From Octopus sinensis (taxonomy: Eukaryota), in the NCBI RefSeq assembly GCF_006345805.1, contig NW_021828887.1, positions 1 through 7,349 on the forward strand: 7,349 nucleotides of DNA, read 5' to 3'. Below, one piece after another: positions 1 to 7,349 of this stretch. A program made the position numbers and the translations under genes. The stretch's first letter is position 1, and each line of letters starts with the position of its first letter. The notes beneath the pieces are model-generated. The model saw only the letters and a program-made list of their open reading frames with translations, made no database searches and had not been told where the DNA came from.

Positions 1-3000
1 GCGAACCTTCATTCACTTTTGCTGATTTCACAGCTTCGTTGGAAGTCAACCCTTCCGCGACTTTAGCCGTTTTCACAGCTTTTTTAACTGGCGAACCTTC
101 ATTCACTTTTGCTGTTTTCACAGCTTCGTTGGAAGTCAACCCTTCCGCGACTTTAGCCGTTTTCACAGCTTTTTTAACTGGCGAACCTTCATTCACTTTT
201 GCTGTTTTCACAGCTTCATTGGAAGTCAACCCTTCCGCGACTTTAGCCGTTTTCACAGCTTTTTAACTGGCGAACCTTCATTCACTTTTGCTGATTTCTC
301 AGCTTCGTTGGAAGTCAACCCTTCCGCGACTTTAGCCGTTTTCACAGCTTTTTTAACTGGCGAACCTTCATTCACTTTTGCTGATTTCTCAGCTTCGTTG
401 GAAGTCAACCCTTCCGCGACTTTAGCCGTTTTCACAGCTTTTTTAACTGGCGAACCTTCATTCACTTTTGCTGTTTTCACAGCTTCATTGGAAGTCAACC
501 CTTCCGCGACTTTAGCCGTTTTCACATTTTTTAACTGGCGAACCTTCATTCACTTTTGCTGTTTTCAGCTTCGTTGGAAGTCAACCCTTCCGCGACTTTA
601 GCCGTTTTCACAGCTTTTTTAACTGGCGAACCTTCATTCACTTTTGCTGATTTCTCAGCTTCGTTGGAAGTCAACCCTTCCGCGACTTTAGCCGTTTTCA
701 CAGCTTTTTTAACTGGCGAACCTTCATTCACTTTTGCTGATTCTCAGCTTCGTTGGAAGTCAACCCTTCCGCGACTTTAGCCGTTTTCACAGCTTTTTAA
801 CTGGCGAACCTTCATTCACTTTTGCTGATTTCACAGCTTCGTTGGAAGTCAACCCTTCCGCGACTTTAGCCGTTTTCACAGCTTTTTTAACTGGCGAACC
901 TTCATTCACTTTTGCTGTTTTCACAGCTTCATTGGAAGTCAACCCTTCCGCGACACTTTAGCCGTTTTCACAGCTTTTTAACTGGCGAACCTTCATTCAC
1001 TTTTGCTGTTTTCACAGCTTCATTGGAAGTCAACCCTTCCGCGACTTTAGCCGTTTTCACAGCTTTTTTAACTGGCGAACCTTCATTCACTTTTGCTGTT
1101 TTCACAGCTTCATTGGAAGTCAACCCTTCCGCGACTTTAGCCGTTTTCACAGCTTTTTTAACTGGCGAACCTTCATTCACTTTTGCTGTTTTCACAGCTT
1201 CATTGGAAGTCAACCCTCCGCGACCTTTAGCCGTTTTCACAGCTTTTTTAACTGGCGAACCTTCATTCACTTTTGCTGTTTTCACAGCTTCATTGGAAGT
1301 CAACCCTTCCGCGACTTTAGCCGTTTTCACAGCTTTTTTAACTGGCGAACCTTCATTCACTTTTGCTGTTTCACAGCTTCATTGGAAGTCAACCTTCCGC
1401 GACTTTAGCCGTTTTCACAGCTTTTTTAACTGGCGAACCTTCATTCACTTTTGCTGTTTTCAGCTTCATTGGAAGTCAACCCTTCCGCGACTTTAGCCGT
1501 TTTCACAGCTTTTTTAACTGGCGAACCTTCATTCACTTTTGCTGTTTCACAGCTTCGTTGGAAGTCAACCCTTCCGCGACTTTAGCCGTTTCACAGCTTT
1601 TTTAACTGGCGAACCTTCATTCACTTTTGCTGTTTTCACAGCTTCATTGGAAGTCAACCCTTCCGCGACTTTAGCCGTTTTCACAGCTTTTTTAACTGGC
1701 GAACCTTCATTCACTTTTGCTGTTTTCACAGCTTCATTGGAAGTCAACCCTTCCGCGACTTTAGCCGTTTTCACAGCTTTTTTAACTGGCGAACCTTCAT
1801 TCACTTTTGCTGTTTTCACAGCTTCATTGGAAGTCAACCCTTCCGCGACTTTAGCCGTTTTCACAGCTTTTTTAACCGGCGAACCTTCATTCACTTTTGC
1901 TGTTTTCACAGCTTCATTGGAAGTCAACCCTTCCGCGACTTTAGCCGTTTTCACAGCTTTTTTAACTGGCGAACCTTCATTCACTTTTGCTGTTTTCACA
2001 GCTTCATTGGAAGTCAACCCTTCCGCGACTTTAGCCGTTTTCACAGCTTTTTTAACTGGCGAACCTTCATTCACTTTTGCTGTTTTCACAGCTTCATTGG
2101 AAGTCAACCCTTCCGCGACTTTAGCCGTTTTCACAGCTTTTTTAACTGGCGAACCTTCATTCACTTTTGCTGTTTTCACAGCTTCATTGGAAGTCAACCT
2201 TCCGCGACTTTAGCCGTTTTCACAGCTTTTTTAACTGGCGAACCTTCATTCACTTTTGCTGTTTTCACAGCTTCATTGGAAGTCAACCCTTCCGCGACTT
2301 TAGCCGTTTTCACAGCTTTTTTAACTGGCGAACCTTCATTCACTTTTGCTGTTTTCACAGCTTCATTGGAAGTCAACCCTTCCGCGACTTTAGCCGTTTT
2401 CACAGCTTTTTTAACTGGCGAACCTTCATTCACTTTTGCTGTTTCTCAGCTTCGTTGGAAGTCAACCCTTCCGCGACTTTAGCCGTTTTCACAGCTTTTT
2501 TAACTGGCGAACCTTCATTCACTTTTGCTGTTTTCACAGCTTCGTTGGAAGTCAACCTTCCGCGACTTTAGCCGTTTTCACAGCTTTTTTAACTGGCGAA
2601 CCTTCATTCACTTTTGCTGTTTTCACAGTTCGTTGGAAGTCAACCCTTCCGCGACTTTAGCCGTTTTCACAGCTTTTTTAACTGGCGAACCTTCATTCAC
2701 TTTTGCTGTTTTCACAGCTTCATTGGAAGTCAACCCTTCCGCGACTTTAGCCGTTTTCACAGCTTTTTTAACTGGCGCCTTCATTCACTTTTGCTGTTTC
2801 ACAGCTTCGTTGGAAGTCAACCCTTCCGCGACTTTAGCCGTTTTCACAGCTTTTTAACTGGCGAACCTTCATTCACTTTTGCTGTTTTCACAGCTTCGTT
2901 GGAAGTCAACCCTTCCGCGACTTTAGCCGTTTTCACAGCTTTTTTAACTGGCGAACCTTCATTCACTTTTGCTGTTTTCACAGTTTCGTTGGAAGTCAAC

Positions 3001-3194
3001 CCTTCCGCGACTTTAGCCGTTTTCACAGCTTTTTTAACTGGCGCGAACCTTCATTCACTTTTGCTGTTTTCACAGCTTCATTGGAAGTCAACCCTTCCGC
3101 GACTTTAGCCGTTTTCACAGCTTTTTAACTGGCGAACCTTCATTCACTGTTGCTGTTCACAGCTTCATTGGAAGTCACATCTTCCGCAATTAGC
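1..3194. repeat. 90-bp tandem repeat array, 35 full units plus 1 partial, running off the window start
   Basis: Consensus GCGAACCTTCATTCACTTTTGCTGTTTTCACAGCTTCATTGGAAGTCAACCCTTCCGCGACTTTAGCCGTTTTCACAGCTTTTTTAACTG. Units start at 1, 91, 181, 270, 360 ... 2951, 3041, 3132. Each unit carries the GTTTTCACAGCTT core twice, 45 bp apart. Similarity fades after about 3187-3194. Confidence 0.99.
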
Positions 3195-3280
3195 TTCTTC
3201 AGCAATTTTCTCATTTTTTTGTGTAGGCAAACCTACTACGTCATCATTTTTGACATTTTTGAACAAGTATTTTTGTTCAT
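1..3280 (-). CDS. Putative Lys/Ala/Val-rich 30-aa tandem-repeat protein (over 1000 aa if homopolymer indels are errors); start uncertain, continues beyond the window
   Basis: The minus frame is stop-free within every intact unit (for example ORF 1565-2197, 7 units). The shared residues of the two 45-bp halves use different synonymous codons (ACG/ACA, GCT/GCA, GTC/GTG, GGG/GGT). The unique flank continues with similar peptide (IAEDVTSNEAV, GLPTQKNEKIA). There is no uninterrupted ORF as assembled; the ATG at 3280-3278 is in frame only if further indels are assumed. Confidence 0.5.
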
Positions 3281-3337
3281 TTTTCCGTGGAAAGTGTGTG
3301 TTTTTTTTTTTTTTTCGTGTGTTTCAACGTACAGCAG

Positions 3338-3357
3338 TCCCCTCCGTGAGGAGGGGA
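3338..3357 (+). other. Perfect 8-bp GC-rich hairpin with GTGA (GNRA-type) loop
   Basis: TCCCCTCC-GTGA-GGAGGGGA read directly from the sequence; function unknown. Confidence 0.8.
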
Positions 3358-3467
3358 AAACAAAGTTTCCTGGTTCAAAACCAGCAACAGTTCAAACAAT
3401 TTTTTTAAACAAGACAATTTAAACACGTTTTAACACAAATCAACAACAATATTTCACTGACAAAAAA

Positions 3468-3588
3468 ACTCACGTGGTAAAAGTTCAATACTTAATTATC
3501 GGACAACCTGCCCGACACCCAGTACTAGCGAATCCAAAAATACGAATGAGATCTATTATTCTCCCTGTCCGCCCACGTGAGTGAGTCA
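3468..3588. promoter_or_regulatory. Candidate cis-regulatory cluster: two E-boxes, a GC box and an AP-1 site
   Basis: CACGTG at 3471-3476 and 3574-3579; CCGCCC at 3569-3574 (GGGCGG on the minus strand); TGAGTCA at 3582-3588. It lies about 190-310 bp upstream of the putative minus-strand CDS. Motif matches only. Confidence 0.3.
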
Positions 3589-3668
3589 TAGAGCATTCCA
3601 TTTTACAGAGGTAAAAACTGCAGTTGAAATTCTTGGAGAGAAAGCATTATTGTTTATCAAAAAAGGGG

Positions 3669-3713
3669 GGTCGAATTAATTAATATTAATAATTAATTAT
3701 TATAAATTCGACC
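3669..3713. repeat. Inverted repeat with 9-bp arms around a pure A/T core
   Basis: GGTCGAATT (3669-3677) ... AATTCGACC (3705-3713); 3674-3708 contains only A and T. Confidence 0.75.
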
Positions 3714-3992
3714 AATGTTTGATTCTTAGTATTTTCAATCTAAATCAGAAGAAATCTCTGAGCTGATGAAGGAAAAGTGGCGTTTCCCACAAATCCAGAA
3801 AAACAGACTGTCCTCGGATATCGTATATGGATGTGATCTTTCATTGTTTTTCCCTTATACCTATGTGAGTTATTTTTCTGAGTATGCATTGTCTGGAGAC
3901 TTTATTTGCAGTTGAAGAAATAGCCAAAATTTGGCTGCTATTTCTGAAAGTTCGGTGTGTGGTAAAGTGAATTCTTTTACTTACCATATTTT

Positions 3993-4013
3993 TATATATA
4001 TATATATATATAT
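3993..4013. repeat. (TA)10 microsatellite
   Basis: Direct reading. Confidence 0.95.
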
Positions 4014-4249
4014 GTATATTGGCATATAGAGATATGTGTAGGTCTTTCAATAAATTTGTATTTATTTCTGTAATTACCCAGGTAAGAAATAAATAAATAC
4101 AATTCTATAACAATATAAAAGTGAAAATGGCCCCAGCTTGAGTGAGGGTATTAAGAATTTAAGCTTAAATGCAAGTTATATTTCTAGCTGCTACTAGATA
4201 AGCAATAATATATGTCTGTAATTTCATTATCACCTCCGGTAAATAACTG

Positions 4250-4396
4250 TGATGATGATAATAATAATAGCAAGAACAACAACTACAGTAAAATTAAAAT
4301 AGAAATCATAATAATCATATTAATAATAATAATGATGATGATGATGATGATGATGATTATGATGGTGGTGGTGGGGGTTGATGATGATGATAATGA

Positions 4397-4430
<34 letters not shown>

Positions 4431-4455
4431 GGTAGTGGTGGTTTTGATGGTGATG

Positions 4456-4520
<65 letters not shown>

Positions 4521-4598
4521 GATGGTGGTGATGGTGGTGGTGGTGGTGTTGATGTTGATGATGATGATTATGATGATGATGATGATGATGATGATGAT
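4250..4598. repeat. Compound trinucleotide microsatellite (GAT)n/(AAT)n/(GGT)n
   Basis: Alternating GAT, AAT and GGT runs; these account for the poly-M/V/D/G ORFs in the track. Confidence 0.97.
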
Positions 4599-4827
4599 CT
4601 CTTCTGAGAATTATTCATATCAGATCAGAAATAAATGGAGAATGTACAGATGAAAAGTTGATACTATATAACAATGACAGTCAAAGGTTTTGGAGTGACA
4701 TCTGGAAGAAAGATAAGGAGCACAAGAAGGATGCTGAATGGTTGCAAGAACTGAAACAAACAGTTATTTTCACCAAACAGGCAGAACTAGTCATTTCAGT
4801 TAGAGAAGTGAAGAAAATCAGCAAAAA

Positions 4828-5955
4828 ATGGGCAACTGGAAGGTCCCGGGACCAGATGGAGTTCAAGGTTACTGGACCAAAATATTTGGTGAATGTCATG
4901 CACGAATAGCTGTGCAACTTAGCATCTTGTTAAATGACGACCAAGGAACAGCAGAGTGGTTAACATCGGTTAGGAAAGTGCTGTGCTTGAAAAACGTCAA
5001 AAAAAGCAATACGGTAGACAATTACAGGCCAAAATCCTGTTTGCCACTTATGTGGAAGTTATTGATTGGAATATTTGCAGAGTCAATGTACAAACACCTG
5101 GAAAAAATGGAGTCCTGCCACATGAGCAGAAGGGTTGCAAGCCTAAGTGTAGAGGTACCAAGGATCAACTCCTGATAGACAAAACTGTACTTAGAGACTG
5201 CAAGAGGAGGAAAAGTAACTTAGCCATGTCATGGATCGACTATCGTAAGGCGTACGATATGATCTCACATTCTTGGATTATGGAGTGTATGAACATATTT
5301 GGCATTGCATCGAATGTTGAGCGATTGCTTGGAAAAGGTATGGCGAATTGGAGGACAGACCTGACAGCATACGGAAGAAGCTTAGGGACTGTAGAAATTA
5401 GAAGGGGCATCTTTCAAGGGGACTGCCTGTCCCCACTGATCTTTATACTGTGCTTGATACTACTAACACTGATTCTGAGGAAAGCAAAAGCTGGGTATGT
5501 ATTCAAAAGCCACCAACAAAAAGTAACCAATTGTTATTCATGGATGACCTCAAACTTTATGGTAAAGATGGAGCCCAAGTCAGCTCCCTCGATGATACGG
5601 TGTATACTTTCAGTGCTGATGTCAGGATGGAGTTTGGACTGAGAAAGTGTGGTGTGTTAGTTTTGAAGAGAGGCAAAATCAAATGTATGGACGAGCTAAC
5701 GATACCGTCGGGGAAGGTTATGAAGCAGATAGAAGAGACGGGTTATAAGCACTTGGGATTTTGGAAATGGATAAATTGATGGAGAAAGAAATGACAGAAA
5801 AATTTAAGGTGGAGTACTTACGCAGACTGAGACTGATCCATAAGTCGAAATTAAACAGACGGAAAAAGATTGACACTATCAACATCTGGGCAGTTTCACT
5901 CCTTAGATATGGAGCAGGGGTAATCGCATGGACAGTAGACGAACTAAACAGCTTA
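4828..5955 (+). pseudogene. Reverse transcriptase domain and thumb, frameshifted
   Basis: Motifs in order across frames: [65 protein letters not shown] (QGD 5415-5423), LFMDDLKLY (FMDD 5537-5548), FGLRKC, YKHLG, WAVSLLRYGAG. Frameshifts near 5105, 5525 and 5760. Confidence 0.95.
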
Positions 5956-6119
5956 GAATTGAAAAGGAATGAAACTGAAAATAGGTGCGCAAAGAAAAGA
6001 ATGCATAGACAATTTCATAGGTATTTTGAAGGTAAGACAGATAGAGAAAAAAGATGGCTGTAGATGACTAAAAGTGATTTAAAACCAGAAAGGGATCTCT
6101 AATCTGTGCTGCCCAAGGG

Positions 6120-6738
6120 CAAGCAATAAGAACAAACTACAGGATTGACGACACATCAGAAAGTGATTAGTGCAGAATCTGTGGATTAAATGGTGAAACC
6201 GTATGGCATATTACCTGTCAATGTCCGCCACTAGCCCAGAAGGAATATAAGAGACGCCACGACAATATAGCCAAGTTTGTCCATTGGACACATTGCAACA
6301 AGTATGGACTTGACTGAGCAAAAATTTGTACGACCACAAACCCGAAGGCATCGTGAAAAATGATAATACAAAGATCCTGTAGGATTTTATGATTCAGTGC
6401 AACCATGAGATAGAGAACAGGAAGCCAGATATAGCCTTAATTGAGAAAGAAACCAAACTATGCTGGATCATAGATAAAGCATACCCAGCTGACAACAAGC
6501 TATGCGATAAGGAAGAAAGAAAAGTTGAGAGATATGACAGGTTAGCTTGGGCGGTTAAGCAGTTGTGTCGATGAAAGAGGTGGTAGTAGTACCAATAATT
6601 GTCGGAGCCCTGGAAATAGTGACTAAAAATTTGAGAAGTACATGGAACAAATAGAGACTGCAATTAGGGTGGATCACTTTCAGAAAACAGAACTGCTTGG
6701 AACAGCCGGCATACTCCGGATGGTGCTCGAAAAAATAA
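6120..6738 (+). pseudogene. C-terminal CCHC zinc knuckle plus restriction-like endonuclease (RLE) domain, disrupted
   Basis: CRIC-GLNGETVW-H-ITCQ-C (C-X2-C-X8-H-X4-C, 6171-6224); RHDN (6255-6266); KIL*DF; RKPDIALIEK..CWIID (PD at 6425-6430); KEERKVERY; VVPIIVGAL; ELLGTAGILR. In-frame stops at 6168 and 6380 plus frameshifts. Confidence 0.9.
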
Positions 6739-6800
6739 GAGGTTTTACCTTAGTTACAGCTGACACCGTAGTACATCTCCAGCGTTAGCTGTGCAAAGGC

Positions 6801-6804
6801 AATG

Positions 6805-6868
<64 letters not shown>

Positions 6869-6886
6869 TGATGATAATAATAATAA
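6801..6886 (+). repeat. (AAT)20 tract with GAT interruptions: 3' tail/target of the retroelement
   Basis: AATGAT(AAT)20(GAT)3AATAATAATAA immediately follows the element's 3' UTR. Confidence 0.95.
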
Positions 6887-7349
6887 CACAATGCCCTGAT
6901 GCAGTACCAGGCAGTGGCTCTCATGGCTTCTGATCTTAACTGATTGGAAGTGTTATCATGTACATTGTTTTGTCTTGGTATAAAAGGTGGGCTACAGCAA
7001 ATATTCTGCTCAATACCACAGATTTGCTTGTCAGTTGCTTGACCTTAATCAGTTGAGCATGTCCCTTAGTGGCTGACGATATGGCATCTCTGATCACGAG
7101 CAGAAGTAGTGGGGGAGCATCATAGCCATGTGTTGAGAGGGATTCTTTGGGTTTGAATAATTCACCTCTGGAAACATGGGTGGTTTTTCAACATCCTTAA
7201 ACAACCCTTGTTCAGGGACCGTTTGAGCGGGATGGGCTACTCACCTGAAGAAAATTCTAACTGGGCCCCCACCGCAAGGTCATGTGCAGTTTATCTTGAT
7301 ATGAGATCACCATGTCGCGCGCATATGGTTGTGATGCATGTGCCTGGTG
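6887..7349. mobile_element. Probable second interspersed repeat of unknown class abutting the AAT tract (runs off the window end)
   Basis: Sharp switch from microsatellite to balanced-composition sequence, with no ORF in the track. It resembles a high-copy repeat I recall from octopus genomes, but this is unverified. Contains ATTGG (6943-6947) and TATAAAAG (6979-6986). Confidence 0.35.

Follow-up and report, generated by a model that had tools for sequence, protein, structure and literature searches.

Probable origin of a satellite-like array in Octopus sinensis by tandem amplification of a coding repeat at the 5′ end of a LINE ORF1

A 7,349-nucleotide stretch of the Octopus sinensis genome (NCBI RefSeq assembly GCF_006345805.1, contig NW_021828887.1, positions 1 to 7,349; hereafter the window) begins within a satellite-like array of 90-bp units which, with a probability that we put at about 0.85, was generated by tandem amplification, in place, of a coding repeat at the 5′ end of open reading frame 1 (ORF1) of an Octopus long interspersed nuclear element (LINE) of the L1/Tx1 type. 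An initial annotation, made from the letters of the window alone, had taken the codon-like pattern of the array as the imprint of selection on a peptide, and had proposed a hidden giant exon encoding a protein that could not be assigned to a known family. The repeat is now assigned, namely, to the N-terminal region of the LINE ORF1 protein, and what stands in front of the array is the 5′ untranslated region (5′UTR) and the start codon of that LINE rather than the flank of an exon. Inasmuch as the pattern would be inherited from ORF1, it is no sign of selection on the array itself.

The array occupies positions 1-3177 and is read on the minus strand, as delineated by Tandem Repeats Finder (TRF), unit variants, and blastn. 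TRF detects a 90-bp period in 35.5 copies, with 97% matches and 1% indels, inside which a 45-bp sub-period (65% matches) marks the two halves of each unit. Because the start of the window cuts the array, 35.5 copies is a minimum, and the half-units in the window number at least 71. The minus-strand frame reads (AVKTAKVAEGLTSNE-AVKTAKVNEGSPVKK)n, and the units are about 99% identical to one another, indels aside. Such substitution variants as do exist are arranged in blocks (runs test at an A/G site, p = 0.024), as expected under unequal exchange. The regular array ends at 3177, beyond which a degenerate first unit and a set of N-terminal codons lead onward to an ATG at 3256-3254.

It is this boundary that ties the array to a LINE. 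Read on the minus strand, window positions 3692→2965 are homologous to the 5′UTR, start codon, and N-terminal coding repeats of LINE copies in Octopus vulgaris, with identities of 86% to locus L002 (9579-10278), 85% to L001, and 88.5% to L003 over blastn alignments of 453-744 bp; the homology takes in about 440 bp upstream of the ATG in addition to the repeats. The 5′UTR corresponds to 3257-3692 on the minus strand and is 88% identical to L002 9579-10000 (blastn, alignment A3), while the ORF1 start, placed at 3178-3256 by alignment to L001-L003, consists of the ATG followed by MSKNDDVVGLPTQKNEKIAEEA and the diverged first repeat unit. Proteins P0001-P0004 open with the same peptide, and a second in-frame ATG is located at 3280-3278 on the same strand. 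Within the array itself, the unit represents the amplified B and A half-repeats of the ORF1 N-terminal region. Its counterpart in L003 (10097-10186, inside ORF1) is identical at 88 of 90 positions and already carries all four of the silent differences that distinguish the two halves (ACG/ACA, GCT/GCA, GTC/GTG, and GGG/GGT), which thus predate the array. This counterpart is followed by an AEKSA-type half-unit, a variant that window units 4, 5, 8, and 9 also have, and a CCG variant at window position 1877 is the L003 state. On these comparisons, the coding signature of the array is inherited from the ORF1 of a retrotransposon. The unit is moreover found on many chromosomes within LINE copies, a dispersal that tells against the exon first proposed.

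How a few coding repeats may have become such an array can be outlined as follows. The ancestral LINE copy would have carried three to five half-repeats of 15 amino acids, equivalent to about two copies of the 90-bp unit. One B+A pair within these pre-existing A-B-A repeats would then have multiplied to at least 35.5 units, presumably by unequal crossing-over or replication slippage, leaving a young, homogenised, satellite-like array to which the LINE 5′UTR and start codon are still attached. The codon pattern, on this scheme, would have been laid down during the evolution of ORF1 in active elements and subsequently copied along with the unit. Should the internal promoter of the LINE be active, the array would be transcribed on its minus strand, and whatever was translated from it would be an aberrant repeat protein of the ORF1 N-terminus rather than a host protein.

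Taken by itself, the array offers a coding signal that is suggestive rather than compelling. The initial annotation had transcribed the two minus-strand 45-mers without error, and the four changes that it had described as silent, three in AVKTAKV and one in the Gly codon, are indeed third-position changes. Across their full length, the halves differ at 15 positions, of which eight fall in codon position 3, four in position 1, and three in position 2. The signal is weak since the consensus unit has three open frames out of six, two of them on the plus strand; since one plus-strand frame has three silent codons between the halves versus four in the minus-strand frame; and since four of four differences would fall in one named phase by chance in roughly one case out of 27. 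Pfam searches with the three open consensus frames returned sub-threshold noise only. The three open frames and the count of three silent codons versus four are also what could be said for an ordinary noncoding satellite with a codon-like pattern arising by chance, a reading that can hardly be right in view of the near-identity of its unit to a segment of an open LINE ORF1 that leads into a conserved body.

Variation among the units likewise bears on whether the array has been selected as a protein. Two silent between-unit variants that had been reported, AAT/AAC (in 16 units) and CCA/CCG (the variant at 1877), are both present. Three replacement variants in the proposed frame had been passed over, namely, Thr>Ser in seven units, Val>Glu in five, and Ala>Thr in one, so that the variable sites within the array comprise three non-silent and two silent. 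The proposal of selection on a peptide survives in part: strand and frame were correctly chosen, and the peptide did evolve, as a 15-residue N-terminal repeat of a LINE ORF1, while the 3:2 variation within the array gives no hint of purifying selection there.

The element from which the repeat derives is scattered over at least six chromosomes or contigs of O. vulgaris and is represented by six copies (L001 to L006; sequences OX597815, OX597816, OX597822, OX597824, OX597825, and CATOCA020000002). It is a non-LTR (long terminal repeat) element of about 6 kb (about 5.6-6.3 kb), copies of which are 97-99% identical, consistent with recent LINE activity. The 6.3-kb element common to L001 and L002 is 97.6% identical between them, and L003 matches over about 4.2 kb at 88-95%, whereas L005 (P0053) and L006 (P0027) have ORF1 bodies that are 54-70% identical to that of L001 and ORF2 regions that are about 85% identical. 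At the 5′ side, homology begins at varying points (L003 9770, L004 9495, and L002 9299). The N-terminus of ORF1 holds the repeats, and its body contains a CX2CX4HX4C knuckle (CYGCGEIGHIRMEC); a search of the PDB with the ORF1 body gave weak zinc-knuckle matches only. The ORF2 of the related loci has the domains Exo_endo_phos (7.7e-05), RVT_1 (1.2e-29), and zf-RVT (1.3e-09), and its closest solved relative is human L1 ORF2p (1.2e-57 over about 690 residues). A protein search with ORF2 retrieved 367 relatives, all of them unnamed and hence without a clade label. L1-Tx1 LINEs, comprising 13 families and 421 insertions, have been recently active in O. vulgaris (PMC13282606), and domain architecture, the best PDB match, and that survey together suggest that the present element is of L1/Tx1 type. 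It shares with the elements described there a two-ORF organization, an ORF2 that encodes endonuclease, reverse transcriptase, and zf-RVT domains, and a putative CCHC knuckle in ORF1, a likeness of architecture. Another account of octopus LINEs (PMC9115989) was considered as a source of the family and set aside, as it describes RTE and Dong elements instead.

All six copies, which fall into three subfamilies, keep the repeat in frame between an upstream ATG and a downstream ORF1 body. The encoded protein begins with MSKND(E/D)VVGLPTQKN, continues through three to five half-repeats built on the 15-residue motif AKV.EG....AVKT, and proceeds to PSEKTK-FNFAAAA; the repeats end at a conserved NFAAAAGRKTEEIKMEE segment ahead of the putatively RNA-binding ORF1 body. 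There are three in-frame half-units in L003 and L005, four in L006, and five in L001, L002, and L004, and none of the six related loci has more than five. TRF detects only 2.7 copies of an 84-90-bp unit in L002. Differences in the length of the repeat region between copies are all multiples of 3, and in L003, L005, and L006 the frame is free of stops from the repeats into the ORF1 body. Constraint on the encoded residues is another matter: between L001 and L003, Nei-Gojobori estimates of the ratio of nonsynonymous to synonymous substitution rates (dN/dS) reach 0.70 in the repeat region, which has 10 silent and 24 replacement changes, as against 0.32 in the ORF1 body and 0.27-0.41 in ORF2. To judge from these alignments, it is mainly the frame and the motif that are conserved in the repeat region.

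In the remaining three copies, a shared TAA separates the repeat part from the ORF1 body (L001 at about 10379-10381, L002 at 10373-10375, and L004 at about 10379-10381). This TAA is followed by AAA ATG, and a sense codon stands at the same place in L003, L005, and L006. L001, L002, and L004 reside on different chromosomes or contigs and are 97-99% identical to one another; the source element of their subfamily probably carried the TAA, in which case the repeat peptide of this subfamily would be a separate upstream ORF of 124-126 residues. One further locus, L005, is a LINE-rich cluster in which nested or adjacent related ORF1 and ORF2 segments (227-3572, 4456-7747, 8001-12781, 13543-13854, and 18351-18795) lie within 20 kb.

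Protein databases place the repeat in the same family. Searches with six consensus 30-mers recovered only three O. vulgaris "hypothetical proteins," encoded on three chromosomes, and a word-indexed search with the ORF1 N-terminus and the start of the body yielded four matches, all from O. vulgaris. When 1.84 billion representative proteins were searched exhaustively with HMMER, using the longest ORF of the array in the window (210 residues) as query, three further O. vulgaris proteins (P0027, P0034, and P0053) emerged, from diverged subfamilies with repeats such as KVAEGSPSDEAVKTA. The top HMMER match, P0005 (2047 residues, 2.7e-36), and most of the others were rejected as unrelated Ser/Glu/Val-rich proteins matched by periodicity or composition; the true relatives in the entire collection are only O. 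vulgaris LINE N-termini. As to detection of a product by its peptides, VNEGSPVK occurs in ordinary copies as well (P0003) and so is not diagnostic of the array, for which VAEGLTSNEAVK, absent from the six copies examined, would serve better.

These results weigh heavily against assigning the array to the host, whether as a giant exon of repeats in one of its genes or as a domesticated gene derived from ORF1, with more than 1000 residues of the 30-residue repeat under selection. In favor of such a gene, the unit is open in its sense frame, and most of the interruptions resemble technical homopolymer deletions, such that a frame of at least 1059 codons behind the ATG is possible. That frame is nonetheless preceded by a LINE 5′UTR and LINE start codon, with no intron or acceptor, and a long run of the repeat is present in no protein among the 1.84 billion representatives. 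The near-identity of the units means that an open unit makes an open array without any selection, and the replacement variants outnumber the silent ones. In addition, an AlphaFold model of the 126-residue N-terminal region, computed from a shallow alignment of seven sequences, has a mean predicted local distance difference test (pLDDT) score of 49 and is devoid of secondary structure, which lends weak support to a repeat region that is disordered rather than a coiled coil. We consider a host exon of either kind very unlikely.

In the sequence as given, the frame of at least 1050 residues that had been proposed is absent. Of 35 units, 16 are of non-triplet length (88, 89, 91, or 92 bp), and the longest stop-free stretch is 214 residues on the minus strand, compared to 298 on the plus strand. 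Several features suggest that the consensus accuracy of the assembly is low around the array and around repeat X, a high-copy sequence elsewhere in the window (3715-4035). The 24 indel events in the array comprise 21 deletions and three insertions, recur at a few sites that are mostly homopolymers (T6 at unit position 80, T4 at 25, and C3 at 50), and are singly scattered without clustering (runs test, p = 0.5); private indels outnumber private substitutions by about 10:1. The N-terminal codons upstream of the array contain four more deletions (of 1, 2, 2, and 1 nt), all in A-runs (3150-3250), which break the frame of the window. Compared to two mutually agreeing copies of repeat X, that of the window has five substitutions and seven indels, six of which are deletions in the window, mostly in homopolymers. 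Most frameshifts in the window are thus probably consensus or assembly errors, and a single open frame of at least 1059 codons may well run through the true array. An open array needs no selection, given that its units are about 99% identical and each is open. The homopolymer deletions bear on any reading-frame argument made from this assembly. Along window positions 3150-3260 and 3715-3999, the differences from paralogous copies are mainly deletions of 1-2 nt in A/T homopolymers. The O. vulgaris reference was assembled from Oxford Nanopore Technologies (R9.4.1) reads, followed by polishing with Hypo (PMC10700109).

If all frameshifts were assembly errors, the array could belong to a functional LINE copy whose ORF1 simply has much longer N-terminal repeats, and which is expressed and perhaps mobile. 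The retained 5′UTR and ATG are compatible with this, as are the excess and scatter of deletions at recurrent homopolymer sites, unlike the clustered substitutions, the corresponding excess of deletions in repeat X, and the in-frame variation from three to five half-repeats between subfamilies. Yet the other copies seen have at most five half-units, a 3-kb insertion would bring the element to more than 9 kb, the window lacks the downstream part of the element, and the TAA in three near-identical copies indicates that the repeat part is dispensable as a fused domain there. We regard such a functional copy as unlikely, if somewhat less so than a host exon. A highly improbable extension would be an intact repeat protein, longer than 1000 residues, that uses the LINE promoter and start codon, has been kept as a host or regulatory product, and owes every frameshift to error; if it existed, it could be, for example, a disordered decoy of the ORF1 N-terminus that interferes with LINE particles or, alternatively, a new gene born from a transposon coding repeat.

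Several considerations also weigh against the favored account, in-place amplification of an ORF1 coding repeat. The window stops inside the array, and the ORF1 body and ORF2 would fall beyond it. The mechanism of expansion is one that we infer, and the copy number of the array could be mis-assembled. The zf-CCHC domain of ORF1 scores 18.7 bits in Pfam, against a curated cut-off of 20.8, and the L1/Tx1 label comes from architecture and the best PDB match rather than from phylogeny. Finally, the repeat region has a dN/dS that does not fall clearly below 1, which points to a peptide that is only weakly constrained.

Among known systems, the closest functional analogue of the octopus ORF1 repeats is the length polymorphism region (LPR) of rodent L1 ORF1, where in-frame tandem repeats of 42 and 66 bp vary in number by family (Sookdeo et al., 2013; PMC3600994). 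In both systems, the 5′ half of a LINE ORF1 contains tandem repeats that preserve the frame, with a copy number that depends on the subfamily, and both combine a moderately high dN/dS in this region (0.61 for the mouse coiled coil, PMC3600994; 0.70 for the octopus repeat) with stronger constraint on the remainder of ORF1 and on ORF2. They differ in that the mouse LPR has one to three units within a heptad coiled coil (PMC3600994), whereas the octopus unit of 15 or 30 residues is rich in Gly, Pro, and Ser and is modelled as unstructured. With its 35.5 or more units, the array copy also exceeds by more than 10-fold the family-level variation described for the LPR (PMC3600994). A mollusc LINE of putative L1/Tx1 type thus offers, in an ORF1 N-terminus made of unstable in-frame 15-residue repeats, a parallel to the rodent LPR.

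In structural terms, the array comes closest to tandem or satellite DNA formed from repeats inside retroelements. In common with satellites born from transposable elements (PMC9659126; Vondrak et al., 2020, PMC7004042), a short internal repeat of a retroelement has given rise to a long homogeneous array. Most of the transposable element-derived satellites listed in one review originate from untranslated regions, long terminal repeats, or terminal inverted repeats, whereas the octopus array comes from ORF1 coding sequence; the LINE-coding satellites in that review (PROsat, Pvc20, and chicken HinfI) are derived from ORF2, and ORF1 is not mentioned (PMC9659126). The more than 10-fold expansion of one copy may represent a first step from coding sequence to satellite DNA. 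More broadly, a transposon gene can pass a genuine codon signature on to a tandem array, and for that reason a silent-site pattern within a repeat unit does not prove that an array is a gene.

The 5′UTR contains two hairpin-forming blocks, at window positions 3330-3395 on the minus strand (columns 101-160 of alignment A3), that are conserved across otherwise diverged subfamilies and may be promoter or RNA elements. One has the form CTGGTT-TTGA-AACCAG and the other CCCCTCC-(TCAC or GTAA)-GGAGGGG, in which the stem is kept and the loop varies. At the junction of the 5′UTR start and repeat X, positions 3664-3714 form an AT-rich near-palindrome (GTCGAATTAATTAATATTAATAATTAATTATTATAAATTCGAC), within which TRF reports a 17-bp period at 3674-3707.

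Outside the array, the window consists of AT-rich eukaryotic DNA. Repeat X, which measures about 280-320 bp and was identified by blastn on the plus strand, is 95% identical to L001 15269-15538 and L002 15238-15527 and 88% identical to L002 8959-9279. Its copies at the O. vulgaris loci are at L001 9244-9513 and 15269-15538, at L002 8959-9279, 9299-9578, and 15218-15584, and at L004 9495-9571 and 15338-15576. In all three loci, X lies in the same orientation directly upstream of the LINE 5′UTR and again after the 3′UTR, where it is followed by the first 49 bp or so of the 5′UTR and an (AT)n run, a layout suggestive of a terminal direct repeat or of LINEs arranged in tandem. An inverted pair of X copies forms a palindrome upstream in L001 and L002, and the window has only the inverted copy, 23 bp from the start of the 5′UTR. 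Rfam and tRNA scans of the window gave no match, and X is not a recognisable tRNA-derived short interspersed nuclear element.

Farther along, positions 4650-6750 of the plus strand contain a decayed retroelement fragment with a reverse transcriptase (RVT_1, 6.8e-09) and the motifs FMDDLKLYG and CRICG...HITCQCP, broken by many stops and frameshifts. Membership of this fragment in the family of the array LINE was considered and rejected, the two being on opposite strands and only 23% identical over 111 residues by tblastn. The window also has the microsatellite load typical of octopus, namely, a long impure (ATG)n tract with GGT-rich blocks at 4332-4598 (88.7 copies), an (AAT)n tract at 6801-6886 (28.7 copies), and a short (TA)n tract at 3985-4010, and these microsatellites give rise to spurious poly-Met, poly-Asp, and poly-Gly ORFs.

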